Source: Mytilus californianus (Eukaryota). From it: a stretch of DNA of 64,000 bases. Under the pieces are notes generated by a model. That model did no database searches, was not told where the DNA came from, and worked only from the letters and a program-made list of their open reading frames with translations. Made by a program: the position numbers and the translations under genes. Shown piece by piece: positions 4,470 through 64,000 of the stretch. The stretch lies in the NCBI RefSeq assembly GCF_021869535.1, contig NW_026262745.1, positions 93,930,001 to 93,994,000 on the forward strand, in the 5' to 3' direction. How positions within the stretch are numbered: the first letter of the stretch is position 1; every line of letters starts with the position of its first letter.

Positions 4470-5960
4470 AAAAAAATTGAGAATGGAAATAGGGAGTATG
4501 TCAAAGAGACAACAACCCGACCAATGAGCAGACAACAGCCGAAGGCCACCAATGGGTCTTCAATGCAGCGAGAAAATCCCGCACCCGGAGGTGGTCCTCA
4601 GCTGGCCCTAAATAAAATTGTGTGCTAGTTCAGTGAAAATGGACGTCACACTAAAATCCAAAACATATAAATGAACTAAAATTAAAAAACATACAAGACT
4701 AACAAAGGACAGAGGCTCCTGACTTGGGACAGGCGCAAAGATCCGGCGGGGTTAAACATGTTTTGTGAGATCTCAACCCTCCCCCTATACCTCTAGTCAA
4801 TGAAGAAAAACGAAACACATAGCAATACGCACAGTAAAACTCAGTTTAAAAGAAGTCCGAGTCCGATGTCAGAATAGGTAACAAAAGAAACTAAGCAAAA
4901 TGACAATGATACATAAATGAACAAAGGACTACTAGCAGTTACTGACATGCCAGTTCCAAACCTCAATTAAACTGATTGAAAGATTATGTCTTCATCATAT
5001 GAAAATCAAGTACAATCCCTCCCATTAGGGGTTTAGTATCATACCATCATACAATATATGAGAAGAACATAACCCGTATAATGCCAACAACTGGTTTTAG
5101 AATAAATGTGTTTATTTCCGATGCAAAGACCCTATGAGTGAATCAATATATACCAAAATATGCAATCCTTAATGACTTGACAACAGTATCGTAACTATAT
5201 TCTTTCCGAATAAGTCTGTTTAAAGGTTTGGTTAGCTTTTGAGGTGAATGCCGACATTTTTGTGCTTTGTAAAGAATATTAACATAAAATATTGGATGTG
5301 AAATACCTGAACGTATAAGATGTCTGCATGTTGATTTATATTTACGAATGATATCCTTGCACCGATGATAAAATTTAGTAAATGTTTTGACTAGTTTGTG
5401 ATATCGAAAACCCTGGTGTAATAATTTTTCAGTAATACAGAGATTTCTTTCGTTGAAATCAAATACGTTGTTACATACACGAGCGAATCGAACAAGTTGA
5501 GATATATAAACACCATAAGATGGCGACAAGGGAACGTCACCATCTAAAAATGGATAATTAACAATTATTATAGGAAATGAAAAATCATCTCTTTTATCAT
5601 AAATTTTGGTATTAAGTTTCCAGTGTTCATTGTTAGTAATAGCTTTATTTAAAGTCAGTTCGGCAGGATAAATATCTTTAGTATACATACTGAAGTCGTC
5701 ATTTTTGAGAGCCAATATATCATCTAAATATCTAAAAGTGTTATTAAATTTTTGAATCAGATGTTGTTTCGATGGGTCTTTACAGATTTTAGTCATAAAT
5801 TGTAACTCATAACAATACAGAAACAGGTCCGCAATAAGTGGCGCACAGTTAGTCCCCATGGGAATTCCGATAACCTGACGATATACGGAATCTCCATAGC
5901 GAACAAAAATGTTATCTAGTAAAAATTCAAGGGCAGTTATAGTATCTTACAGATTACACA
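4470..5960 (-). mobile_element. 5'-truncated Penelope-like retroelement: defective RT C-terminal half (ORF 5143-5859) plus about 670-nt 3' region
   Basis: Motifs GIPMGTNCAPLIADLFL, FRYLDD, IYDKRDDFSFPI and SYGVYISQLVRFAR are typical of PLE reverse transcriptase. The expected FLD motif before KLNTKIYDK is missing, indicating an internal deletion. Confidence 0.85.
4711..4794 (-). ncRNA. Twister-ribozyme-like motif, P5-type permutation, in the PLE 3' region
   Basis: Minus strand reads AGAGGT-ATA-GGGG-GAGGG-[TTGAGATCTCACAAAACATGTT]-TAA-CCCC-GC-CGGATCTTTGCG-CCTG-TCCCAAGT-CAGG-A-GCCTCT. This matches the twister core (UAA, P2, T2, P3, P4, L4 UCCCAAGY, GAGGG). P1 is non-canonical. Confidence 0.75.
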
Positions 5961-7714
5961 CTTTACGCACATACATGTATATAAATTTGTGCTTTCCGCT
6001 AGCTCTTCATTTTCAATAAAAATGTAGGTCCCTTCTAAGGTAAATAGCTAGTACAAATGATCTCTCTAATATTGCAGGAACAATTACGGAATTGACAAAA
6101 AACCTACAGGGTAGAACAACAATTAAAGAAAACTTATGAATGAAACTCGTATAAAGTTCAAATTGATAATAACATTAATTTGAAATAATGACACATTATA
6201 ATTTCAATAATTGAATATCAAACATGTCAAATACAGATCTTTTTATGTCTTATAATCCCTTTCGTCTGGTATTGAGAACACAGTTATCGTCCTTTGGATT
6301 TCTTTATCTATATAGGCCACATTCCCAGTTTATTTATTCATTATTGATGCATTAAATAAGAAAATTGGGTATATATGTGAAGGGCATTTGACCCATTAAT
6401 GTTGTGGCATCAATGATTTTCTGTCCTCTCAGTCATGGTATATTGGATTTAAAACCTTTGAATAGCGGTTTACATGTATGTCAATTTAAAGGGAAAGACT
6501 TATGATAAAAAGTCAATGATATTTGGTATGCAGTTGTATGAGCATTAGGATATCTCATTTCTACGGAGATTAGTTGGTCCTGTACTCTCATACAGTCATG
6601 GTATATTGAATTTGAAGCTTTTGGATAGCGGATACATACATCTCTGTGTCATAAGTTTATTATTGAAAGGTCCATATATGATCCTTTTCATTTTTGTATA
6701 ATTTAATGCTTTTTCAGTAATTAACAACAATGCTACAGGTTCACAAAACCGAAAGTAAACAAAATGCATTTGTCAATAATTTCAACTACTATAAGTGCAT
6801 ATACAAACCCTGCGGTCTCTGGTCTGTAATTATTATCATCTTTATGCTTATTTTTCTTTCTTCTTCTGAAAGAATTCCAGAACTTCTCCATTATAAATAA
6901 GGAAGTAAATTAGACGATGTCGTACACTTTAAGAAAATCAATGTTTCGTCTGAAAGGGTTATTTTTAAATTTATTATCAGGTGAACGTAGCTGATTGTAA
7001 TAACGATTATCAATGGCCAACGAATGTTTGCTTTTGTGTTGTATACAAAAGAGAATGTCACAAATTTAAAGTATATTTCAGTATATTAAAATTCTAATTT
7101 AATACTTAAAATGTGTTTTTTTTCTTGAAAGAATTCAATTGCAGGTGTGTACAGAAAAAGGGGGTCAAGGTAGTATATGAATAAAAAATTAACACAATGC
7201 ATGGATTGAATGGACGGATATTCACGGAAATAGTAGCAAAGAGTTAAGTCGGAAATCATGCATTTGTGATTTTTATGTTCGTCTTTTTTTAATCGTTCTT
7301 CGTGATTTGGTCCGTGGTTGAGAGTTGTATTATTGGTAATCATACCACGTCTTCTTATTTTTGTATTGACGTGGCTCTCTATACATTTATTCATCACAAA
7401 ATTTTTTATCATTTTCATGCATAGACTTTTGACATATTATACTCTAAACGTTGCCTAGTTCCCCCCCCCCCCCCCCCCCCCCCTTTTCAAAATTCTGGAT
7501 TCTCATCTTCTTGACATTTATTCCAGGTGATAAAAATACACCATATCGATTGTAGTAAGAAAATGTAATATTACTTATAGCAATCACTTTGAATCCTCGT
7601 CAACTTATTCCTTTATTAAAGTTTGAATTGATTGTGGGTTGGGTACCTCTGTTGAAAATACTGAAACCGGGAAAGCGAATAGCTATTATAAATGGTATCC
7701 TTGATGACTTTTTA

Positions 7715-10866: not shown

Positions 10867-13265
10867 TTATATCGGAGCTTATTGGACCACCTCCATACCT
10901 ACCTAATACAATCTCTATGGGCTGGACAAAAGCGACACTGCATGTTCGAGTTGGTTAAAACATTTTGCGTACACTTTAGTTTGGGAAAGCTATGCATTTG
11001 ACAAAGTAATAAGAGTAGGCAATATGTGTTTTTTTTTTAGAATAAACGCGAAATAGCAACAAATCCGTTACACATAGACTAAACTAAGTGTTTGTATATA
11101 AATTTTTCAAACAGTTTTTATTTTTTGTTTTTAACAGCAGATCTGAAAAGTCTGAAACTATAATTGTTAAGTTTAAGTTTAAGTACTGGTCATATGTTTT
11201 GCTTGAAGTAAATCTAGAACTGTCAAGTAGCTTTTCAGATAATTTAATATGTTGTTATTTCTTTCAAAAAAAAAGTAACTGGAAATAGCATCCTCTCTGA
11301 GGGTATAACCAGCCCACAAGTCAGTACTTCAGTGTTGCATGAACTATCATTGATATAGTCATAATCTTAAATCAACCGGATCCATAAATTTTCATAAAAG
11401 GGGGATGGGCACAGACTACCATAAGAGGGGGTCCGCTTCAGTGATTCCCTAAGTAATCAACCAAATATTTTCAACAAAAAAGGGGGGGCTTTGACCGTTT
11501 ACAAAACTTTTTTTCTCTAAATTCTAAGGATTTTCTACCACAGGAATAGATTATCTTGGCCGTTGTTTGACCTATATTGGTTTACTTTTACAAAGTGTGA
11601 CTTTGATGGAGAGTTGTCTCATTGGCACTCATACCACATATTCTTGTATGATCTTATATCTGTCTAAGTCGTATTTGGCAAAACCTCAGTTTTGGAATTT
11701 TTAGGTCAACAATGTTCTTCAACTTAATTCGTACTGTATGTGGCCTTTTTAACTTTTTGATTCGAGCGTCACTTTGTAGACGAAACACGCGTCTGGCGTA
11801 CACAATTTTAATCCTGGTATCTTCTATGATGTTTTTATTTATTGACTGCAAGCAATAAGTCAGAAAATTAACTGAAAGACTAACATAACAATTGCTTTAT
11901 TTTCATGACCGTTTCATGTGTTAGTCCAGTAATCATTTACACTGTTTAAATTTTCCCTCTCGAACAAACTTATGTACTCCAGTTGTCTCGAACCTGTTAC
12001 AAGAACGATAACTCGTGTTGTTAAGCAATGTCAAAAATTAGCACTCAATATTTCTCTATTTTCATTGAGACACAACATACTGTAGTTACGCATTAGTTAA
12101 ACAAAAGGAACATCGCATTGGAATTGGGAGACTTAGATGCATATAGAAGCTTAAAGGTTTGCACGTATTTAACTTTAATATGATTTTAGATTATGTTGCA
12201 TTGAATGAGGAAGTAGAATATACATACAACATGTACATTAATGTACGAACTCGTCTTGTGTTTATATTTATCTATTTTCATTATTTAGATTTGCAGCGTT
12301 TAAATCCTTTTACTAAGTAAATAAGTTTGAATTGAACAATTTAATTAAAGACTGTATCTTTAATGAATAAAACGAACAAAATATAACACAAACTGACGAA
12401 TTTACTATTTAGTTTACAAAAAATTGAACATTCTTCCAAGAATTGATCGGTGTTAATGAGTGAAATAGGTCATGATTTGAAAGTTCTAAAAAAAAATACC
12501 CACAAGATTCCAGAGGAACAACAATTTAATTTTCTGTGGAGGGGTGACAATATAAACTTATTGATCATGTGATTAAAAAAAATATTTAAGGATATCATTT
12601 TAACATCTACATATTTTGTAGGTATTGAAGATCTTTGAATACATGACTTAAATGTGTACTATTTATTAGTAATAATAACATTGATTCTGTTTTGATTACA
12701 TCGAATACTTCAGGTTGATGGAACGCCCTCCTTACGCTGAAGAGGCTTTACAACAACAATTATTATATCATGAACATAAAACGAACTTGCGGTATAGGCT
12801 TTGTTCATTGTTGTAGGCCGTACGATGACCTATAGTTGTTAATTTCTGTGTCATTTTGTTTCTTGTGGAGAATTGTCTCCTTGGCAATCATACCACATCT
12901 TCTTATTTTTATATTGACCTGTTGCACGTTAAAAAAAAATGTCCAAATCAAAATGCCGTTTTGATATAGAGGTTGTTTTTATCCCATTCGATCTTTTGCT
13001 ACTTTTATGAACCTACCTATTGCACGTATTGGATAAATGTTAATATAAGACGAAGAAGATGTAGTAGAATTGCCAAGAATAAATATGTTCTTGGCCGGCC
13101 TGAATATTCTCGAAATGTTTTCCACTGGACTTTGAACAAACAACATTAAATATTTGCCACTGGACGTCAAACAAATAACAATACACCAAATTAATAAATC
13201 CTGCATGCATATAAGGCAAATTTATTTACTTTCAAGCTCAATGTGTACTAGGTCATGTAGGTATT

Positions 13266-26590: not shown

Positions 26591-29347
26591 CAGTCAGACC
26601 CTACAGGTCGTGCCTCTTCAAATGTGATATGTCTAAAAACAAGAGCAATTTTTTGTTGATCCCCGACACAATTTCATGTTACTATTATAGTATATTTGTA
26701 CAACTATTGTTACCTAGCATACGAAAGATAACGGACTTCGATAAGTCGGAGATATTAATAATAAAACCACACATTTCTCTTAACAGGTAGGCCACTTGAA
26801 TTTTATGTTTGAACAAATAAGACTTATTCATTTAGGTAGCTTTAGATTTATTGAATATAGAAAACCCACTTCTATTCGTTAATTCGTACTATTGAGTTGA
26901 TCAGAACCATTTTAAACCAGACATACGATCGATAGTAGTATTTTGAGGTGAACGCGCTCTTGGCATGATAAATTTGTAAATATTCATGAATTGTTATGAA
27001 ACTTGGACAAAAGCTAATCTTCAAGATTAAGAAATCGTTTGGATAATTACATTTGTTTTCTGTGTTTATCTGATAATTGGACTTTCTTTTTACAGTCAAC
27101 TTTACACTTTTACACTGACAACAATTATCGCAGACAAGACACAGGGCTCCACGGAACCGTTTTCGAATTGTTTTGTATGCATTGCAAATACATGAGTGTA
27201 CATGTATGAACTATACCTGTTTGAATGGTTTTACACTAGTCATTTTTGAGCCCTTTATAGCTTGCTGTTCGGTGTGAGCGAAGGCTCCGTGTTGAAGGCC
27301 GTACTTTGAACTATAATGGTTTACTTCTACAAATTGTGACATGGATGGACAGTTATCTCATTGGCACTCATACCACATCTTCTTATATCTATGAACTGAT
27401 ATATGAACAAAACGATTGGAAAGGTCGCTAGGTCTGACCAAAAACCCCCAAAAAATAACACTCCCACTATTCATGCAGGAAAAAGTGTTGTTTGGCGTAC
27501 AATTTACACTCTAAGGGTTCTTTAAATTTTGATATTTGAAATGGTGGAATATTAAAACATTGTTATTCCATATACGATAGCAAACGGAAAATCTTTCAAT
27601 CAGCTGACTCGATGCGCGACTACAGGAGAATTTATTTTTCATACATTTAACCAGGACTATTTTGCGCGGTTTTAGCAGTATTTGGATAAGTTCTCTTGTA
27701 GAATTGTCGGAAAATGATAGACTTAATGAAAATTTTGTTATTGAGTTTTATGGGAATAAAACATAAAAATCATCACACGAATTACCGAAAGATATGATTC
27801 ATATATTGTACAGTACGACAAACCACGACAGACCACGACAACCAACAACACCCGACTCATCCGAAAAAAAACAACCCCAAACAATCAAACAAACAACAAC
27901 AAGCTACACATGGTCCAGATAACCAGACAAGGTATAGGCACACAATGTGGTGGGGTTAAACTAGTTTTACGTGCACATACCCCTCACCATCTGCCTATTT
28001 AGGCCAGTAAAACTCCTTATTGAAAAAGATTTGTCAAGTGGACCTACCAACAGGATTCATTTTTCTGTCGTTAAACATGGTTTACATTACCTGAGCTGTA
28101 TTTGGCAAAACCTTTTGAAATTGGCCCTCAATGCTCTTCAACTTCGTACTTTAGTTGGCCTTTAACTTTTTTGATTCGAGCGTCAATGATGATTCTTTGT
28201 AAACGAAATGGGCGCCTGGTATTCAAAATTATAAGCCTGGTATCTTTATAAAACAAAGACGATGTAGCAAGATTTTCTGAGTTGATTCCAATTTTATTCA
28301 AATAACGCGGAAGGTCTGCAGTGTGGTTTCAAAGTTTATATTTGTTCCCCCTTTTCTAAATGCAAAATTCTTTTATTCTTAGAAAATGGAACAAAACAGA
28401 ACCAAACTAAATTCAAGGTAAGAACATGTAACAATAAAAAGATGTGGTATAATTGCCAATGAGGGAGGCAAATCTCAACCAGAGACCAAATGACGTAGAA
28501 GTATAAGCAATTATAGGTCGCCGTGTGGCCGTCAACAATGAGCAAAACCCATACCGAACAGCAAGCTATAAAAGGCCACGAACAAGCATACATCACATCT
28601 TGTCCTTTTGGATTATTTGTGGTTACTTGCCTCTATCATTAACAATCCTTAACGCATGTGATCTTTTTGATTTTATGTTTTTAAATTGACATTTCACGTT
28701 TGAAGTGATGTAAGATCATTTAAATAAAATATGTAAAATTAACTCGTCGAAAGAAACACTTTCACAGAAACTGTTAGTACTGTGTTTTAATTATTCGCCC
28801 TATGCTTATCTGTACTAAGATCCATCCCCTGCATGGGTGGGTAGTGATTTTTTAGAGGGTGCAAAAAGCTTCTTATGTTTGAGTGTCTGTTCGTCTGTGA
28901 CCATTTAACTGGACATTATTAATGATACTTTGAGTGTACTAGGTTTTAAAGTTTTGAGTAGTAACTAAAGTTGAACAAATTCGGCACTAAGCTAGTTAGG
29001 AAAATTTTCTTGTCAAAGATGAGGGTTTTGCGAATTTTATCTTGTTGTATTATAATATTTTAAAATAATATAATCTAATATCATCACTCTTTATATGAAA
29101 TCATGAAATATAAATATAAGATTAATAAAAAATATATTTGAAATGAAATGATTCGCCAATTATTTCTTTAAATTTTAAATTTTCGTGATCTGTTAAAAGG
29201 GTGAATTTTGAGAATTAAATCTTATTTTTTGTTTGACTATAGATGTCATGATTTTAAATATTTGTCGTTTTTATAATTGTTACTCATTTGAACTTGGATT
29301 AACACTTTACTTCGTCAATGCATTCTTACATTTTATTTTCGTTTCAG

Positions 29348-37700: not shown

Positions 37701-40437
37701 AAGTTAACGAAATATAGTCTGATTAATCATTATACAGTCTTAATTAAAACCAAAAACAAACAAAAAACAAAAGTGCAAGAAAAGGGGGGGGGGGGGGGGG
37801 GGGGCGTTCGACTGCAATCCTAATTGACGAGGATTACCAGTTTGTCTATCGAAGGTCAGTGGTTCTCTTCGGGCACGCCTGGCTTCCTCCACCAATAAAA
37901 TCTTGCCGCCACAATAAAGCTTACTGAAGTGGTGTTAAACCCCAACAATCTATCAATCAATATAGATTAATATTATGCAAACACAAAACAAAATAAAACA
38001 AGTACTCTTGAGAATCGTTTTGCTTAGACCAAAGCACAAACAGCTTTTTATTTTCATATCATGTGACAGTTAGTGCAAGTTTTTTTGGTACTTTTTCCTT
38101 ACTATATTTTAAAGCAGAAAGTTGAATGCCTCCAACTCTACATAATTTATCGCAAGACTTATGAAATTGTACCTGGTACCCATGGCACAGTAAGACTGTG
38201 ATTGAGGGGTTAAGGAGTTAAAGAGCATCTTAGAAATCTTACTGCTTCAGCTGCCTCTCTCATAAACTGTTTTGATGGATCGTCCCAAATGGCTGGAACT
38301 GTTATAACAAAGTATAAATCGTCATCTTGTAAGGCATTTCTCAGACGTTCCTGTATTTTCTTCAATAGGTGGTTCTTTAAGTATTCTATGGCAAGGCTAA
38401 ATACTTTAAGTGCCTGCATTGGTTTGTCTGCCACATCATTGATCTCTGTTGTTCTGGTAACTCTCTGAAAAAATATCAAAATGATTCCAATTTTTGAAAT
38501 ACAAAAATAAAGTCTTTCGAACGACGTTCTTTTCTTTGAGGTAGATCATGTATCCGACAGTTATTTAGTTTATAAGGATACACGAAGCTAGAATTGTTCA
38601 GAAAACTACTTTTTCTAAAGTCTAGCGGTCAGTATAACAAGTTGAATTTGGTTGATTTATGAAGGCATTTACGCACTTAGACCTCCAACTTGGTGACAAA
38701 AGGGAAGTAACTCTTGCTCAAATTGTGTCAAGCGAAACCTACCTGTATTTCATTTCTTTAAAAAAGGAAGAATCATTTGAATCATTAGAATTGAGTCCCT
38801 TCTCGGAAATTTCCTGTAGATTACAGATCTTTGATAGTCTATATTAAATTTCGTTCTGCTTTTCTAAACTTGCCATAATTTAGAGCCTAATATATTGTAT
38901 AGACATTTTTCTGTTATTGACCTCTAGATGTGTTTGTTTTCGTGTCGTTGGGTTGCTTATTCGTTGACGTGAATCCCATGTCTCCTTTTATTAATTTCAT
39001 TACAACTCAAGGTCAATGTTCATAATGCACGATTTTTATAATCTTCATTTAGGATTGATTTTCAAGGTCAAGAGCCAAACTGATGTCAAACGTTTAGTTC
39101 AAAGCATAAGAATGCAAATAGATAATCGACAATCGACTCAAATAAAAATGGCCCCTTATATCAGATGTCAACCAGAGATTCAAGGTCAAAAAAGAGAGGT
39201 GAAAGGTACCAAAGGGATATTCAAACTCAAAAGTCTAAATTAAACTGACAACGCCCGAGCTAAAAAAGAAATAAGACCAACAGACAAACAACAGTACACA
39301 AAACACAACATAGAAAACTAAAGACGAAACAACACGAACCACTCCGGAAGGGTAAGCAGATCCTGCTCCACATGTTGCACCCGTCGTGTTGATCATGTTA
39401 CATTTGTTGTAGTACAAAGATACAGACTATTCGTTTAACGGTGCTAATTAAACATCAGTTAATTTGTTTTTCCTTTAAATTTTCATAATAGGTACTTTTT
39501 TGTTAAGTTGGTGATTGGTTGAAGTTTTTTTTAGCCACCAAATACTGTCACAAAAGTGCGTATGAAAGGAAATCGATGCTACTGTAACACAAAAAAAAAC
39601 CTAAATTTATGACGGTAATTGGAAAATACAGATGTGACAATTAGTTGTTAAAAGTTAAAATAAGAAGATGTGGTATGATTGCTAATGAGACCACAACTCT
39701 CCACAAGAGACCAAATGACATAGAAATTAACAACTATAGGTCACCGTACGGCCTTCAACAATGAGCAAAACCCATACCTCACTGTCAGCTATAATAGGCA
39801 CCGAAATGACAAATGTAAAACAATTCAAAATAGAAAAATAACGGCCTGATTTATGAACAAAATAATGAACGAAAAACAAATATGATATATAGCAACAAAC
39901 GACAACCACTGAAGTACAGACGCATACAGAATGTGGTGGGGTTAAACTAGTTTGAAAGCGCCAACCCTCCCCCTAACCTGGGACAGTGGTGTAACAGTAC
40001 AACATACAAACAAATTATAAAAATCAGTTGAAAAGAGCTTCACTCATCAGATCGATACAAAGCAGAAATACATCTAACAAAAACTCAGACCGGAAGTGGC
40101 AGACGGTACTTATACATCTCCACAACAAAACAAAAAAAAAAACCACAAAGTACAGATCTGAGAGTACTCGCAGTTACTGACAGCTACTTTTGTACTTATT
40201 TCAATGTAAAAGCTTAAACTTTGCATACAAAAAAGATTTCCAAAATTAATTTTACATATTTATCAGGACAGCACTTCGCTTACATATAAGACTCGTCGTT
40301 GGCGCTCGAGAAAAAAAAAGAGATAAAAGACCAAATAATCACAACGAAGTTGAAGAGGAATTTTTAATCAAATTTTTTCAAAGGTTATAGGAAACCTGGA
40401 GCGGCTTTGGTTGTCGATGTCTTAGGTATAAAAAACT

Positions 40438-40468
<31 letters not shown>

Positions 40469-42651: not shown

Positions 42652-43544
42652 TCAAGTCTCTATACTGTATAAGAGGGGTCGGACAGGGAAGAAGACACCT
42701 ATTGATTAGGGGTGGAAGTGTCACGGAATAGAAGTTCCTTCATAATATAAGTTCCAAATGGAAACAATATTCTGGAATATTATTTCCACTGGAATAAATA
42801 TTATAGTAAATGTTCCTAACGGAATAAATGGTATAGAATATTTGTTCCAACAGGAACAGATATTATGACATTGTTTATAACAAAGTTTCCAGTGGAACTT
42901 CTGTTAGGCGGAACAAATATACGTTGACAGAAGTGGTAGTCAATGTTGGGAACTGAGAGAAGAGGGGGATTAAAAGATAGGGATATGTTGGAAAACTTTT
43001 TTTGACCGATTTTCCAAGAGTTAGTGTAAGGGATGTGGAAATTTGGTGAGGTGAGAGGGAATCAGTTATCCCATTGCACATCCCCTTGTATAACCAGTTA
43101 TAAATCGTCCCGAGGCGAGACAAGAAGTTCGCTCCTATTCATCAAAAATCTATGTGAACATAAAAAAGAACAATAACAAATCCCAATTATGTAAACAAAG
43201 ATAACCAATGGTGAGTTTCCTCCTTTGAACAGACTTAGAAACTTGATTAGCACGGTCTTAATAGTTTCAAACTTAATCAACCTGTTTCCCTTTTACAAAA
43301 CATTCTGATTGACTGACTGGTTGTCGGTGTAATAAGCCACTTTCAGCACTCTTTGCTTAATCGTAGCGATCAGTTTTTACTGTTGATGGAAGCCGGAATG
43401 CCCAGAGAAAACCTTCGACAGGAATACTGACAGTGCTAGTAAATTAAGATCGAAGTCGAATGCACTTGTCACAAGCAGGGCTCTAACTCACAACCTCACA
43501 ACCTCAGTGTTGATAGGCTTTTTTTATTAGTTGTTATTGGCTTT

Positions 43545-44066
43545 ATAACTGCAAGTACTCTAAGATCTGTACTAAAGTGTCATTTTGTTGTTGGGATGTA
43601 CAAGTACCCGTCCACGTCCACTCTGTGTTTTTGTTAGATGTATTTCTATTTTTATCCATCTGATGAGTTAAGCCTTTTGCAACTGATTTTTATAGTGTGT
43701 TCTTATGTTGTAATGTTACACCACTGTCCCAGGTTAGGGGGAGGGTTGGGCGCCCGCTAACATGTTTAACCCCGCCACATTCTGTATGTGCCTGTCTCAA
43801 GTCAGGTGCCTGTAATTTAGTGGTTGTCGTTTGTTGCTGTGTTAGATATTTGTTTTTCGTTTATTATTTTGTAAATAAATTAGGCCGTTGGTTTTCTCGT
43901 TTGAATTGATTTACATTTGTCATTTCGAGGCCTTTAATAGCTGACTATGCGGAATGGGCTTTGCTCATTGTAGAAGGCTGTACGGTGACCTATAGTTGTT
44001 AATTTCTGTGTCATTTTGGTCTCTTATGGAGAGTGTCTCATTGGCAATCATACCACATCTGTTTTA
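43545..44066 (+). mobile_element. Abundant ~520-bp non-coding retro-like element with twister-like core; mostly 5'-truncated or partial copies at about 11585-11650, 12790-12910, 13826-13955, 14032-14200(-), 24745-24862, 27225-27390, 28430-28592(-), 36418-36494(-), 44600-44960(-), 46315-46472, 46485-46545(-), 50420-50560, 54335-54435(-), 54520-54610 and 62090-62420
   Basis: Shared 3' end GAAGGCCGTACGGTGACCTATAGTTG...GTCTCATTGGCAATCATACCACATCT with variable 5' extent, the pattern expected of target-primed retrotransposition. Confidence 0.8.
43730..43812 (+). ncRNA. Twister-like motif (P5-type) with two point changes
   Basis: CAGGT-TA-GGGG-GAGGG-[TTGGGCGCCCGCTAACATGTT]-TAA-CCCC-GC-CACAT-TCTGT-ATGTG-CCTG-TCTCAAGT-CAGG-T-GCCTG. 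L4 has TCTC instead of TCCC, and the A after P4 is T. Confidence 0.65.
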
Positions 44067-47000
44067 TAATTATGATCACTGTGGAACTTCTTAGATTAAT
44101 CCACCACTAAGACCCTCAAAAGATACTGAGAAAAGTGAACAACATAAAGAAAAACCATTCAACTACTTAATATCGGTATTACAGTCAACAAAAAAGACAC
44201 ATGCAAGAGGGTCTAGATAGAGTATAATGGGCAACAAAAAAAAAAAAAAAAAAACAGAATAGAGATATATAGGCATAACAAAATAGAATAATTGGGGACT
44301 TAAATATAAACAATAGACAACAATTGGCAAAAAACATACAAAAAAATAGAGAAAAAGAAAGAACCCCATCCAGACCATCGTGCATGTAATCAACAGTATT
44401 AAAGATTGTTTTGAAGATTTTGAAAGTTAAACTTTGTTCAAAATACTTAATTTGTTGTTTCAATAATCATACCGTTCTACACTCTAATATCGGCCGCAGT
44501 ACTTCAAAGTTAGAAACAATCTAAAAATGTTTGGATATTTATAGCACCTGTACCTCTGATATTAAAGAAGTGCATATCTTTCTTTTTTAATGCACCAATG
44601 AGACCCTCAACAGATAATAATTGATTTGTGATTGTTTTACGCCGCACCAGCACAGCACAACAATAAATAACGGTCTAATTTATACAACACACTATATACG
44701 AAAATCAAATATGACAGACATGGACAAACGACAACCACTGAATTACAGGCTCCTGAATTCGGACAGGCACATTAAACCTACGACGGGGTTAAACATGTTT
44801 GTGAGTGCTGAACAACAAACCACCAACCCTCCAACCCTACCGGGGACAGTGGTTTAACATGACAATATAAGAACAAGCTGTACAATTCAATTCAGTTGCA
44901 AATGGCTTAACTCAATAGATCAGTAAGAAGCACAAACAAACCAACTATTATATAACATAAAAACAATAAACACAAAGTACAGATACACGAGAGATGATCC
45001 GGTCCATAACTTTCGATATCATAAGCAAACATTTCAATCAAAGTTATAAACTTATGTTGAAAAACAAGGTTGAAAATAATTAAAAATACCTTGCTTTGTT
45101 GAAGAAATGATGTCTTGGACGTCTAAATGAGAGAATGATTTTCACCTGTCGCCATGTTCGTCGAAAAAGCATCCAGGAAGTAAAATTGAAATGTCCATAA
45201 TAGACATTATGTTTATTGTGAAGGTCGTAAAATTTAAATAATAATAAAAAAAATATACCAAATGTGTGTACAGGCAATGTATATATGCAATGTATTGATT
45301 GTTTATCTATTTCCAGCAATTTTGGTCTTGTAAGGATATATTTTGCATAATTAATAATATTTGTTTAGGAAGTAGGACATTTATTTTTAATACGGTTTCA
45401 ATGCTTCAAAAACAGGTACTTGTTTGGAAATTGCATTCTTTTTATGAAAATTTAATGCAAATATAAAATACGCATTGCCTCGCTTATGCTTCTCTCTTTT
45501 AAAGCATCCATTTGCAGAGTTGCGTGTCAGTATACTCTGCCTCCCCCTTTCAATCTCCAATAGCAAATAGTTATTTATATTTCAATGCGATCTACGTGTA
45601 AATGAAAGAGGCGTGATTCTCTGGTTAACACAACATAAGGTACAGGAAAACCACCCGTTGCTTGTCACAGTTCCGCTAGCAATGTTATAAAGTAAAGATT
45701 CATTTATTTCATATTTGCGACATACATGTATCTATATATTACATGAATATACATGTCCATTTTATAACCATTCGGAACCTACAGCTTTTACTGTCCAAAA
45801 CGATGATAAAACCCTAAACACTTCTTGTCATTTAAATATAGATATTTATTTTTATTTTTACACTTGACCCGACGATCGATCGATCAAATAGTATACATAG
45901 TGACGTCGCAATTTTTGTAATCATTGTTTGTAAATCATGCGATCCAAGGCTACGTACGGCCGGATACGGAAACCGGATTAGAATCTATGAATTTTAAATA
46001 ATTTGTTATGTCTATTTTTCGATTTCATTACAAAAATATAAAATTCATTATAACGAATGAAATCTGTCAAAAGGAACTTGTAATATACACCGTTCTGTAA
46101 CTAGAACAAATTCTTAAAACATGTATGCACTAATGAATTCTTTAAAATTTGTGAAAATTTTAAATTCCTAATAAATATTTTTTTTTTATTTCAGATTTAA
46201 TACAAAATTAAAAAGCTGTTAAAACGAATTAAAATATTTAATTTCGAAATATATAGGTCCCTTTTTTTTTGGCTTCGTGAAAAGCAGACGTTTGTCTTCA
46301 AAGCAATATAAACATTTTACATTTGTCATTTCGGGGATTTTTATAGCTTACTATCCGGTATATGGGTTTTGCTCATTGTGGCACGGTGACCTTTAATTAT
46401 TAACTTCTATGCCATTTGGTATCTGGTGGAGAAATGTCTCATTGGCAATCATACCACATTTTCCTATTTTTATATGTATATAAAATAAGGAGATGTGGTA
46501 TGATTGCCAATGAGACAACTATCCGGCAGAGACCAAATGATATATGCCCATATTTGGCCCTAAACTTAAATTGAAAATAGCAATACATGATCTTGCTCTT
46601 AAACTACTAAGATAACATATTTTTAGAAAACAAAAAACTTTTTTTACATTTTTAAATAGGAGTTACCAATGGCAACAAACCATGACGTTTATTGGTATAT
46701 TTTTTGAAATTTCTTGATTTTTCTTGATTGGTATCAACTTTTGAGCAAATTTTGGATGGCAAAGTATTGGGACACCAAAAACACATACTCGATGGGATTA
46801 TGCTAATAGCTTTAATGAAAAATATTTGTTTTATAACTTTTGTTACTAAAATGGATGGAATACTTCGAAAATCAGCATCCTGCCTCATTCTTGAAATTAT
46901 GCGCATATGATGAAGTAAATTTGATAGTATTTTACATTATTAATATTGTCTAACTTATCTTTATATTTATTTTTATGCATTTCAATAAGTTATGATCAAA

Positions 47001-47840: not shown

Positions 47841-50800
47841 ATGGCAAAAAGTACAAAACAAAATGAAAAAGGAAAAGACAGGTGAGTAAAATGAATGATT
47901 GAAGTATAATTTGCATTTTGAATGGTTATTTTTAGACATATTGTAAAGCTTTAGATCTTAAGATCACAAACGCTAGTATATTCATGGTAGTTTAGTACTC
48001 GTTATACATGTGTAACTATGTTAATCTGGTGTCACAGTTTTCCAACTTATCATACAATAGTTTTTAAATTGATCTTTATTCTATAATTCAGTATTCAGTT
48101 ACAAAAAATAGGATAATCAAATATAAATTCAACTGATTATATTTGTTTTAAAGATGTCATTCTCGAAACTGAAAGTAGTTTCCTTCCTTCTCTTATAGTT
48201 GTGTCTAAACAAGAAAAGAGGATCAATATATTTTTTTATCTTACCTCCTATACATTTCTAGGAATAGGATTGGTTAAAAGCAACCGCGTGGAGATCGTGT
48301 ATATTCCATATTGGGTTAGTAGTCGGGGCTAATTTCAATACACGGTTAGTAGTGGTGTTACGTCTCTTTATAAAAACAACACGGTGTTGAGGAGAAATCT
48401 TAAAGGTTTCAACAGACGAAGAAATTGATGATGAACGATTGAAATAAATTAATAAAACACATTTAAAGCTAACATGTTGTAATTGTTGGCATTTGTTTTT
48501 GTATAGACCAATGGAAGAAGGTTCTTAATACTAACGGTATTGAAGACTTGATCACTTTGATAGGCCACTAGTCTAAATACCACATGTTTAGATAGTCGAT
48601 ACGATAAATTCGTTACATAGTGTGTTAGTGACCTAATACGATATTTATAGATTATCTATGGTTATCTGAACGAGATTGATTTTCTCGCTTGAGCCGGTAC
48701 GGCGAAAGCGAGAAAAGCAATCGATTTGAGATGACCAATGGTAATCTGTTTATCGCTATTTTACCTATGAAGACGTTGTTAATTTCCTTGACAACGGCAC
48801 GTGTTCCCTTAGTTTCTAGCGATAATTTTCATATCACTCGACTCCATTTTCATATCACTCGACTCCGCTGAGAACGGAAATTATCAGTCAACAAGATCAA
48901 AGGAAAAATTCTTAAAATAGCGATAAACAAATTTATATGGCGTTAGTAAATTCCATATGGGGATTCCAGCTTCGCTCTCACCCCATATATATCGTATAAG
49001 GTCACTAGCACACTCTGTAACTAATAATATTATGCCCCATTTTTCACTGATGTAAAGTGATTTAATATTTAAAAGTTTATTAAAAATTTTGCAAGGATAA
49101 AAAGAAAGACCCATCGCTTGCGATCATAACTATCAGTCGATTTTACCAAAATCTCTGTATAAAGATGATAAAGGGACGTGATTTCTGTGTACAAACAATT
49201 GATTTAATGCTTTTTAACACAAAGTTGACTGCTGTACCCCGATTTTTGATATTTTTACCTATTATGTCTGTTTGTTTTGTTCACACATTGTTGTCAATAT
49301 AATGGAATTTTATGAGACTGTCATACAAGTGAGAGGTTTAGCTAGCTATAAAACCAGGTTTAATCCACCATTTTATACAAAAGAAAATGCCTGTACCAAG
49401 TCAGGATTATGACAGTTGTTATCCATTCGTTTGAGCTTTTGATTTTGCCATTTGATTAGGGACTCTCCTTTTTGAATTTTCCTCGGAGTTCGGTATTTTT
49501 GTTATTTTACTTTTTAATATCCTAAGACGACGTAACAGTCGTAACCAGAAACAATTTGTTTTCCATGTTTGGTATCCAATTTGAAACAAAATTAAATTTC
49601 ACGTGTAACACCCCCCTCCCCAAAGAAAAAAAAGTTGAAAAACAAAAAAAGAAGTTTACTGTACATAGTGATACATTAACATATTATGACACATTAATAT
49701 TTTATAATATTTATTTTTTCAGCCATGAAATGGGTTCTGCCAAACTTTTTGTGGCTGCAATTGATTTTGGAACTACCTATTCTGGGTACGCATTTTCAGC
49801 CCGAAATTCTCCCGAAACCTTATACACGTGCGACTGGAAAAATAATAATTTACTGTCCAGGAAAGCTCCGACGTCCGTTCTTATTGACAATGACGAACAG
49901 TTTGTAGCATTTGGGTTTGATGCAGAAAACAAATATATGGCTAGTCTCGAGAATGATTCGGATTCAGATTCAGATGACAGTGACGAAGAGAAAAATCCTT
50001 CATGTAAAGCCGTATATCGTTATTTTAGTCGGTTTAAGATGGAACTACACGATAAGGTAATTTGAAAGGGTTTATATATTCACATATACTGTTTATTGAT
50101 TTTTTTTTTTATAAATGACCAATGGGAAATGAGTTCAGTTGAAATTGTTCCCTTTTTTTATCAAAGTTTTTTATTACTTCGATCAGCTCTTATCAAAAAA
50201 TGACTGTAGAAATATGGTTTCGTGTCGTTTAGTTTTTGCATGCCTGTTTCAGCAATTGCTATTTCCTGTCGTACATTTTTAAAATTTACAGATAACATTT
50301 ATAGAGCTAATTGAAGGCACGGACGGTATTGCAATCAAAAGCCAGAATGTTTCTTGCATTTCTTGTGACCGATTATGATTTTTATAATTTTTCTACCATT
50401 ACGAAGTTGGTCTTGTTCGCAAATTAGTTGTTTTGTTATAAATTACTAGGCCGTTAGTTTTCTCGTTTGATTTGTTCGACATTTTTCATGGCGGAGTCTT
50501 TTATAGCCAATTATACGGTACGAGTTTTCCCCATTGTTGAAGGCCGTACGGTTGCCTGTATTCTTATATTGACTAATCTTCTAAATTGGAATAGTCTCCA
50601 GTGCTTGGGATTCGATCCTAAAATAACTTGTATAGGATATAGTCTTTTTCCTTATTTCTTTAACGGTCTGGCTCTCATCGATGTATATTTTAAACATACT
50701 TGAATTAATGATTTCGTCTTTTTGATTTATTCGAAAAAAAGTATATGCATTGTGATATAAAAGTAAAATTTAACATTAGTGTTAAAAGGACTGAAAAAAA

Positions 50801-59720: not shown

Positions 59721-60302
59721 AGAGATTATATGGAGGTACTGGACTTAATTCCTGTGCCCGAAAGTAAAAGCTATCTATATATATATAAGTACCGCTAGTT
59801 ACATCTGACCTGTTATGACATTGATAAAGCCTGAGAACTACTAGTATATGGGAGGATTGCTGTTATTGCCTATCGCAATCAACAGTATATCCTAGAGCAC
59901 CGTCCCTTGGTGTCTCCAGCAGATGAACAAATTTCCATCTTTATAGATAATAATTTAAGTATGTTCAAGTTCAGACTTTATTATTATATTTTTATTTTTA
60001 TTTTATTTATATTTTTTTTTGTTTTTTATTTGTGCACTGCTGGACATAGAAATAGTAATAATAATAAGGAAGGAAGAAAAAAAAATACTCAAGAGTTCTT
60101 TTAATGTATTTTTGTTATTAATGCTTTTTTCATTTGTCTATTATAATATCTGTCACGTTATATACTGTACAATGTCTCATGTTTGTTGCTTAAAAAAAAG
60201 TAAAATCACAAAAATACTGAACTCCAAGGAAAATTCAAAAAGGAGAGTCCCCAATCAAATGGCAAAATCAAAAAAACAAACACATCAAACGAATGGATAA
60301 CA

Positions 60303-60402
60303 ACTGTCATATTCCTGACTTGGTACAGGCATTTTCTTATGCAGAAAATGGTGGATTGAACCTGGTTTTATAGCTAGCTAAACCTCTCACTTGTATGACA
60401 GT
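60303..60402 (-). ncRNA. Twister-like motif, second variant, inverse copy
   Basis: Same architecture as 49317-49416. 8-bp P3 CATTTTCT/AGAAAATG; the triplet at the predicted cleavage site is CAA. Confidence 0.65.
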
Positions 60403-61960: not shown

Positions 61961-64000
61961 AGTGGTCCATAAGTGACTGGTTGTTTGGCAAAATTATTTC
62001 ATACTGGTTTTGACTTTGATATCTTTTTCAATGGTTTATGATTTAACTATTTGATAATTTGGTTTTCATGGTCTAATTTTTGTCTAAAATCTGTTAGTAT
62101 TCATACTTTGATGAGTTGAGCCTTTTTCAGTTAATGTTTTATTGTGTGTCCGTTTATGTTGTATTGTTACACCACTGTTTCAGCTTAGTGTAAAGATTGG
62201 CGCCAGATAAAACGTTCAACCCCGCTGCATTTGTTTGCACCTATCCTAAGTCAGGAACCTGATCTTCAGTGGTTGTCGTTTGTTGATGTGGTTCATAAGT
62301 GTTTCTCGTTTCTCGTTTTTTATATAGATTAGACCGTTGGTTTTCCTGTTTGAATGGCTCCGTGTTAAAGGCTGTACTTTGACCTATAATGGTTTACTTT
62401 AAATTGTGACTTCAATGGTCACGACTAAATACATATTCCAGTACATGCATGCAATTAAATTCGTAGGCAGTCTAACGCATCTTATGGACGTATATTGCAA
62501 AGACTAACTGAAACATCGATGTAGTCCGTGTTTTCACAATGCTTAACTTGATGTCCCAGTCCACTTTAGATAAGCGTTCTACCGATACTAGAAAGTCTGC
62601 TTCATATCTTCATCTGTTTGATTAATGTTGACACATATGGTCGAATTCAAACTAGAATCTTTGACAAATGTGATGATTTCAAACTTTTTTCAATAGTCAA
62701 TTTCCTATTTCTCAGCTGTAACATAACTTCTGCCCATTGTTTGGCGTTTTTATGGCCGTTGAATGTCGGGCAACTTTTTTTTCACATTGCCCAGCCTGAG
62801 GACTTCCGTTGACGATGAGATATGTAACAGGGTCCAATCCAAATTTACTAACCTTCATTCCGGTCAACAACTATTACAATACATACCAATTGCATTTATT
62901 TTTTTTAAGTGGTTCTCGTCCTGAACATGTATGAAATATTTGCCCCTAATGTCAAACAAGCTTCAATTAATCAATTGTCTAAAAAATCTTAAAATACGAG
63001 CTTATTACTGCACATGAAGACATAACCGACTGTTTTTTTTCTCACTTGGCAATGCAATTAAATATCAAATTTCTATGACTATCTACATTTTTTAAACATT
63101 TTGTTTCAAACCAAAGACTTGTATGGTCATGGTTTTTGTCGGAAATTTATGATAACGAGATTGTGGAATACGTTTGCATACCCTCTTACCATGGGATGGA
63201 AGAGGTGGTTTTATACACAAACGAGCCATCATTCTAAAGGCAAATTAATTGTATGTATAGTGTGCAGCTTGCATTTCTGTACAATACAAGAGGTAGACAT
63301 GCTGCTGACATCATTATCTCAATTGAATATGAAAGGAAACGGCGAAATGGCCTTATCAGACTAACATAGGTCACAAAGATTATGTAAAAAGTCATGCACG
63401 TAGGATAAAGTTGAAGATGAAAAACATTTTATATGTCAATGTCCGCTATATAATCTTTTGAGAAATGAGTTATATTATACAATTTCAATAAGTTGTAAAA
63501 AATTCGAAAAGTTTAAACACATGTGCCAAGTTTTAATTGGCTTTTTAATCAAGAAAAACCTAGAGGTATTAGAAATTATTGCAATTTATATTAATAAATG
63601 TTTTGAACTCCGAAAACTATCAATATAGTACAGATATGTTTTTATGTAAGCCTTAAGTATATTTGCCGGTTAATATTACATATAACTGTTATGCTTTTTA
63701 CTTATAAATGTATACTTATATGCTTATGGCTCTGGTATGGCGATGGTTTAGCATTTTATAATTGAGATGATTATATTCATGTTTATACATATGATTTTCA
63801 ATACTATTGTGTCAATTATCTAAATCATTGTAATAAATTATTTTGCTCTTCATGGGTCCTTTAATTGGAATAAAAATATCTCATCTCATCTTATCTTATG
63901 TTATTAGTAAATGTATACTCCATCGGGGGTGAAGTTGGTATATTGCTGCTAAGTTGATGAAGATATATCAATTGGACCAAATCAGAAAAGCTTGGATTGT

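Follow-up and report, generated by a model that had tools for sequence, protein, structure and literature searches.

A twister-like RNA domain in the 3' tail of a Naiad-type Penelope-like element of Mytilus californianus

The abundant non-coding repeat at positions 43545-44066 of the stretch of DNA analysed here, 64,000 nucleotides from the mussel Mytilus californianus (the window), is very probably a dead-on-arrival, 5'-truncated 3' UTR tail of an autonomous Naiad-type Penelope-like element (PLE) of about 4.6 kb, bearing a twister-like RNA domain and left behind by the early-halting reverse transcription that we propose below. A first-pass annotation, made from the sequence alone, had presented this repeat as a unit of about 520 bp and as a twister retrozyme or non-autonomous element. 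The link that it drew between a twister-like RNA and Penelope-like elements holds, as the domain sits in a Naiad tail. The rest of that description is not supported: in other copies the similarity continues upstream into a reverse transcriptase (RT) ORF, so that the flagged stretch merely forms the 3' end of a Naiad element that encodes an RT. What is new here is the identity of the family, the covariation statistics, the test for a short form, and the occurrence of the domain in other assemblies.

The window is AT-rich eukaryotic DNA (GC content of about 33%) from an assembly of 1.65 Gb. When 43545-44066 was compared with the window by blastn, 18 further partial matches were obtained, 14 of which stop at query position 514-516, while their 5' starts spread over query 320-482. 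This brings the family to 18-20 partial copies in 64 kb and agrees with the earlier count of more than ten partial copies, as well as with the common 3' end and the differing 5' extents ascribed to them. The reported absence of an ORF and of a tRNA head was also borne out, since the longest ORF in the stretch has 70 aa and ARAGORN finds no tRNA in it; furthermore, an Rfam search of the window gave no 5S, 7SL or tRNA match that could represent a Pol III head. The first-pass annotation had named terminal repeats as a sign of a DNA transposon, and tandem copies as something to look for. No terminal inverted repeats or meaningful direct repeats were found in the flagged stretch, and no tandem copies in the window or in approximately 300 kb of fetched loci.

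The start at 43545 is not an element boundary but a 14-base internal deletion in the window copy. The similarity of this copy to longer ones starts at about 43512-43519 and ends at about 44068, which defines a 5'-truncated copy at 43512-44068 (+) consisting of the last ~560 bases (3' UTR) of the element. Its identity to a long reference copy, of which it covers positions 2240-2789 of 2816, amounts to about 88%, and its divergence from its relatives to about 8%. A second long 5'-truncated copy of the same tail lies at 39658-40189 (-), and its twister-like domain (39904-39990) has lost P4. The remaining ones are short tail fragments, about 15 in number, exemplified by the 3'-terminal fragment at 12788-12914 (+), with others at 7286, 11607, 13777, 14025(-), 24745, 27219, 28433(-), 36418(-), 46315, 46478(-), 50431, 54360(-), and 54536. 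All the window fragments of this Naiad family derive from the last 560 bases of the element, and isolated terminal fragments of 34-40 nt occur.

The nature of the parent element became evident from 29 high-scoring genomic copies, aligned together with their flanks. These copies share a sharp 3' end, ...CATACCACATCTTCTTTTTTATA, with a T-run near it, and TA repeats often adjoin; in many of 30 copies, the 3' junction enters TA repeats, which reveals an insertion bias for (TA)n. Upstream, the shared sequence continues in these copies for 38 to more than 1500 bases (for example 38, 41, 47, 68, ~90, and 140 bases, up to 930, 1100, and >1500), extensions of more than 2000 bases also occur, and the longer copies contain an upstream ORF with a reverse-transcriptase box of the YxDD type, YLDD (RYLDDIFS). 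A protein search of the genome with this RT ORF returned more than 51000 first-look candidates, and RT copies of 85-88% identity carry exactly this tail, beginning about 257 nt past the stop codon.

In one and the same frame, the ORF presents a GIY-YIG-like motif, then a DKA motif, and then the RT. The GIY-YIG-like motif, read by eye, is N-terminal to the RT (..IYLVT[TGA]TKPKCGIQYVGQTG..RTQEH), the DKA motif, with DKA in place of DKG, is VPVDKAANNVVVVC, and the translation shows a candidate [stop]NC for the CxC linker motif. Two in-frame TGA codons flank the GIY-YIG motif and are conserved in all seven young copies, and the UTR contains a SECIS-like hairpin shortly before the flagged stretch begins (SECIS_1 21.8 bits, under the cut-off of 35; L013:1381-1447). 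Judged by these sequence features, the parent is a selenoprotein-type Naiad Penelope-like element with a single ORF and a length of about 4.6 kb. Since Pfam recognised neither an RT nor a GIY-YIG endonuclease in four pieces of the ORF, the Naiad assignment is based on the motifs and on the literature (PMC8557442). The length comes from two overlapping copies, and the 5' end is approximate, as the boundary kept moving outward. No pseudo-LTR or tandem arrangement was seen in the few full-length copies examined, and no tail directly upstream of three long copies.

Naiads are the most abundant PLEs of bivalves (PMC8557442), and they are recognised by the diagnostic DKA instead of DKG, an N-terminal endonuclease, and UGA codons at conserved cysteines (Craig et al. 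2021, PMC8557442). The element described here resembles the selenoprotein Naiads of clams in its GIY-YIG-like motif, its DKA, its RT, the in-frame UGA near the GIY-YIG, and the SECIS-like hairpin in the 3' UTR, and also in its heavy 5' truncation, its tens of thousands of copies, its TA-rich sites, and the lack of a hammerhead (PMC8557442). It differs from them in three aspects. Its length of ~4.6 kb compares with 3.4-4.4 kb for published Naiads (PMC8557442); the cysteine located 8 aa past DKA is an ordinary Cys in this family, contrary to the UGA of the published clam Naiads; and the tail has a twister-like domain, whereas the paper reports no ribozyme (PMC8557442).

The excess of tails over complete elements would follow from the way in which these elements insert. 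Target-primed reverse transcription would begin at the common 3' end and mostly halt early, leaving thousands of tail fragments of every length. Such 5' truncation predicts more tails than 5' parts, and this matches the rough number of first-look candidates in the genome, 14220 for the tail versus 1778 for the 5' part. The "520-bp element" should be annotated as a truncated Naiad tail and not as a new non-autonomous family.

The twister-like domain lies in the sense strand of the tail, about 450 nt past the stop codon and about 300 nt short of the 3' end. With its outer helix, where 43720-43726 pairs with 43818-43824, it spans 43720-43825 (+) in the window copy and scores 133.9 bits with our own covariance model, R1. 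The core had been placed at 43730-43812, and the Rfam model Twister-P5 indeed aligns there, at 43737-43806, with a sub-threshold score of 20.0 bits. From the outside inwards, the 5' strand of P5, CAGGT (43730-43734), pairs with GCCTG (43808-43812), and all five pairs covary; the difference between CAGGU/GCCUG here and GAGGU/GCCUC at 4.7 kb, which had been put forward as compensatory, truly is so. The P2 strand GGGG (43737-43740, +) is partnered by CCCC (43770-43773) and is followed by loop L1, GAGGG (43741-43745, +), whose GGG (43743-43745) pairs with 43796-43798 to form pseudoknot T1. A linker takes the place of P1 (43746-43766, +), containing the palindromes GGGCGCCC (43748-43755) and AACATGTT (43759-43766), and the predicted cleavage step, by analogy with the twister consensus, would be U^A, the first two bases of UAA (43767-43768, +). 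Pseudoknot T2 pairs GC (43774-43775, +) with GT (43801-43802). Two hairpins complete the domain: P3, CACAT / ATGTG (43776-43790, +), and P4, CCTG/CAGG (43791-43806, +), with the loop L4 TCTCAAGT against a family majority of TCCCAAGT. Minimum-energy folding recovers the nested helices.

Compared with the family majority, the window copy has the two core changes that had been noticed before: C to T at 43797 in loop L4, which makes a T1 pair G-U, and A to T at 43807 (+), at the P4-P5 junction after P4, where nearly all lineages have A. The suspicion that this copy may be dead fits its degraded appearance, with the ~8% divergence and these two changes. A truncated insertion with neither an ORF nor a promoter is most likely inert, and the twister-like RNA of the window copy is probably inactive.

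No twister was found by Rfam in the whole window, either at the gathering score or at E<=10. The matches appeared only in scans of short stretches, namely Twister-P5 at 43737-43806 and, with 23.6 bits, at 4718-4785(-), against a gathering score of 37.6. The Rfam twister scores of the copies (20.0, 23.6, and 20.2 bits) thus stay under the thresholds of 37.6 or 67.2, and one distant copy (L066) gave no Rfam twister match. The Rfam alignments match GAGGG, UAA, GC, and the P4 hairpin with its loop UC.CAAG. R1 was built from 30 close copies, because MAFFT misaligned the P5 of the diverged window copies, and it finds eight instances in the window and very many in the genome. Its matches represent at least four tail lineages, which differ in their helices. 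More than 100 genomic instances are identical 110-nt copies that all receive one and the same model score, and this indicates recent activity. These identical copies appear to be the GGGATCCC variant with a P3 longer by 4 nt, which points to a very recent amplification of one subfamily.

Within the window, the other lineages include a sister Naiad family, about 77% identical, whose twister-like domain lies at 4701-4797 (-) next to the RT remnant of the same copy (5141-5886), and a diverged tail lineage of the family B type, with domains at 62171-62274 (+) and 44733-44853(-). Further twister-like domains belong to other repeat lineages (49317-49417 (+), 60302-60402 (-), and 27906-28001 (-)), the first two of which carry the T1 change GAGGU with UACCAAGU. 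Beside the copy of the sister Naiad, SECIS_1 scores 32.5 bits (cut-off 35) at 4996-5060 (-), as would fit a selenoprotein-coding element; one TGA recurs within the RT-region match of the sister family, so the Sec positions may differ between families.

The fold is supported by its covariation. Among 65 distinct sequences, 23 of the 30 pairs change on both sides. In the combined set of 34 sequences, to which the following figures refer, 93.2% of cells are paired and 24 of the 30 pairs change on both sides. The double-change cells amount to 120, compared with 28.5 in shuffles (none of 500 reaches 120) and with 15-25 in controls with slid partners. P2 and P4 are paired in 92-97% of cells and show compensatory changes. 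T2 is 97% paired, and T1, with 85%, covaries even though it is absent from the model (GC to AU eight times, GC to UA three times). The pair that closes P4, G-C, shows no change of type, the same constancy that has been described for this pair in twister crystal structures (PMC5408937). The loop nucleotides GAGGG, UAA, GC, and UCCCAAG match the Rfam consensus, except that the last base of L4 is U and not C, which leads to a G-U or A-U pair in T2.

The domain is not restricted to this assembly. It recurs behind Naiad-type ORFs, with 48-50% identity, in two other public assemblies, either about 265 or 600 nt downstream of the ORF or right at its end, and in these distant copies the outer helix and the helices P3, P4, and P5 have entirely different sequences. 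The Naiad-type protein has 2729 homologues at E<=1e-10; a few of them carry a precomputed RVT_1, and none came with an informative name. Of seven related proteins from other assemblies that were inspected, six contain PADKAANN. One of the distant tails (L063) had no match in a DNA search of this genome, and so probably comes from another species, although the missing match is weak evidence. The fold is under selection across lineages.

The linker sets the domain apart from a standard twister. A P1 stem is absent, as the linker of 21-24 nt cannot pair its two ends, but it consistently contains two palindromes. The first one reads, depending on the lineage, GGGCGCCC, GGGATCCC, TGGTACCA, TGAGATCTCA, AGGTACCT, ATGGCCAT, or TAGCTAGCTA, and the second one AACATGTT, AAACGTTT, AAACTAGTTT, or AAACCGGTTT. 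Both stay self-complementary while their sequence changes, including in the lineages from other assemblies. The predicted folding energy of the linker monomer is 0 to -4 kcal/mol, versus -13 to -21.5 kcal/mol for the homodimer, which would therefore be more stable by 10-20 kcal/mol. In vitro, twister can cleave without P1 (PMC5408937), and for the small hammerheads of other PLEs cleavage takes place in dimers, according to the work cited in PMC6765202; taken together, and by analogy, these facts make a dimer-dependent twister plausible.

By analogy with the twister consensus, we infer that the tail RNA would self-cleave at U^A (43767/43768 in the window copy). Self-cleavage would here play the role that the hammerhead has in other PLEs, trimming tandem or read-through transcripts to unit length, with circularisation possibly following, and the ribozyme may act as a dimer through its palindromes. 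In its complete form, this proposal states that Naiads carry their own ribozyme, a P1-less twister with covarying palindromes that cleaves only as a dimer or in tandem transcripts, conserved across Naiad lineages in the genomes of several invertebrates, with copy numbers of hundreds of thousands in each bivalve genome. We put it forward as a tentative proposal, with the balance of probability somewhat against the whole of it. The cleavage of a monomeric mRNA would part the ORF from the 3' end required by the RT, which counts against the simple version of the mechanism, and no 5' or 3' ends of copies pile up at the predicted cleavage site in a small sample, made up of the window and incidental copies.

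This last result would also fit a conserved fold that is real but non-catalytic, a structure in the 3' UTR serving recognition, dimerisation, or packaging by the RT of the element. Such a role would agree with the missing P1, the sub-threshold Rfam scores, and the U at the end of L4, and the strong preference of the palindromes for the homodimer would suit a dimerisation signal. However, the unpaired bases that remain fixed amid changing helices are precisely those of the twister L1, L4, and UAA site, a double pseudoknot with the twister consensus would be needless for a mere binding site, and cleavage in vitro does without P1 (PMC5408937). We therefore consider a purely structural role unlikely, if still deserving of attention.

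Far less probable is the existence of a discrete, non-autonomous twister retrozyme of ~520-600 bp, whose transcripts would cleave themselves and circularise and which PLE proteins would mobilise in trans. Its very high copy number and the more than 100 copies with identical twister domains, suggestive of recent activity, could be read in this way, and so could the 5' ends of the 38 long tail copies, 8 of which lie no more than ten bases from a single point that precedes 43545 by about 85 nt. This shared start, at TTAGTC (L003, L008, L009, L014, L022, L023, L027, and L061), coincides, however, with the 3' foot of the SECIS-like hairpin, where the RT could plausibly stall. Stalling is the simpler reading, and the coincidence suggests that the RT often stops at this hairpin. 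Moreover, a tree of 30 copies has seven of the shared-start copies at scattered positions (6 changes, against a shuffled mean of 6.4); as they form no clade, the shared start reflects a hotspot of truncation and not a short lineage. The remaining 5' ends form a continuum into the ORF, and every copy tested upstream matches the autonomous element; these 5'-end statistics come from the window plus the incidental copies in ~300 kb of loci, where tandem arrays were not seen either. A retrozyme is a short tandem non-coding unit that is not continuous with an ORF, and the tail is nothing of the kind; a hammerhead search of it gave no match at E<=10. The continuity with the ORF, the continuum of 5' ends, the scattering of the shared-start copies, and the lack of tandem arrays rule out a retrozyme as the main explanation. 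As for a SINE derived from tRNA, 5S, or 7SL that had borrowed a LINE tail, the 5'-truncated copies sharing a 3' end with a T-run near it would fit, but there is no tRNA-like head and no Rfam match for 5S, 7SL, or tRNA, the sequence upstream of the longer copies is PLE UTR plus ORF, and this continuity leaves the idea with next to no credibility.

Regarding known ribozymes, the domain shares with twister type P5 (RF02684; Roth et al. 2014 in the part reviewed in PMC5408937) the helices P2-P5, the pseudoknots T1 and T2, L1 GAGGG, UAA, L4 UCCCAAG-, and the invariant G-C pair closing P4. It departs from RF02684 in having no P1, an L4 ending in U, a P5 lengthened by a second helix of 7 bp, and scores of 20-24 bits versus 37.6. 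Hammerheads have been reported in the pseudo-LTRs of canonical PLEs, where they work as dimers (Cervera and de la Pena 2014; Lunse et al. 2017, both as cited in PMC6765202). As in those citations, we find a small motif near the end of a PLE, in non-coding sequence, whose self-complementarity suggests dimer action, with cleavage being predicted in our case. Contrary to the hammerheads as they are cited there, the ribozyme class is a different one and no pseudo-LTR was seen.

Twister variants have also been found within other retrotransposons. In Schistosoma mansoni, the non-LTR retrotransposons of the Perere-3 (RTE) type have T-variants at their 5' end (PMC8501958), and twister variants at the 5' end of RTE-type LINEs are likewise described in PMC7761336. 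Like the Perere-3 T-variants (PMC8501958), the Naiad domain belongs to a retrotransposon and resembles a twister in which P1 is unusual. The former, however, sit at the 5' end, where they free the element from upstream transcripts, and their P1 involves target-site sequence, whereas the latter is internal to the 3' UTR of a PLE. With the metazoan non-LTR retrozymes (PMC7229834; bioRxiv 10.64898/2026.07.22.740005), the tail has in common its kinship to PLE terminal sequences and a small ribozyme, predicted in our case, but those are short tandem non-coding hammerhead units giving circular RNA, and the flagged stretch derives from an autonomous element, as one of its dispersed and truncated copies. 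The animal-retrozyme preprint (bioRxiv 10.64898/2026.07.22.740005) does not mention twister, and full-text literature searches found nothing tying twister to Penelope-like elements or bivalves.

Hammerheads are considered a hallmark of PLEs, and from their absence in Naiads it has been argued that PLEs can dispense with the ribozyme or that it is parasitic (PMC8557442). This argument would be reversed by a conserved twister-like domain in Naiad tails and, if the proposal is true, every endonuclease-bearing clade of PLEs would retain some small self-cleaving RNA close to the 3' end. The known twister variants would also be joined by a very large natural set that the Rfam models miss, and the Naiad set would offer a direct test of whether a natural twister can function without P1, perhaps as a dimer.

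Several minor observations accompany these results. At 46315-46540, an inverted pair of tails, resulting from a tail-to-tail insertion, forms a near-perfect hairpin of ~80 nt, for which Rfam proposes several miRNA precursors, all of them far under threshold (mir-944, 40.7 bits vs 100); inverted Naiad tails could be taken for hairpin RNA genes, or evolve into them. A run of 35 A lies at 40430-40464, about 240 bases past the 5' end of the minus-strand tail copy, and we draw no relation between the two. Among the deposited proteins, a Naiad-type RT fragment (P0054) bears the label of a hypothetical protein from a Campylobacter isolate, most likely due to invertebrate DNA contaminating a bacterial assembly. 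Finally, a called protein at L067:2501-5122, adjoining an AAA_11/AAA_12 helicase gene, fuses a part of a Naiad RT with a ZNFX1-type region, probably as an artefact of gene calling or by insertion into a host gene.
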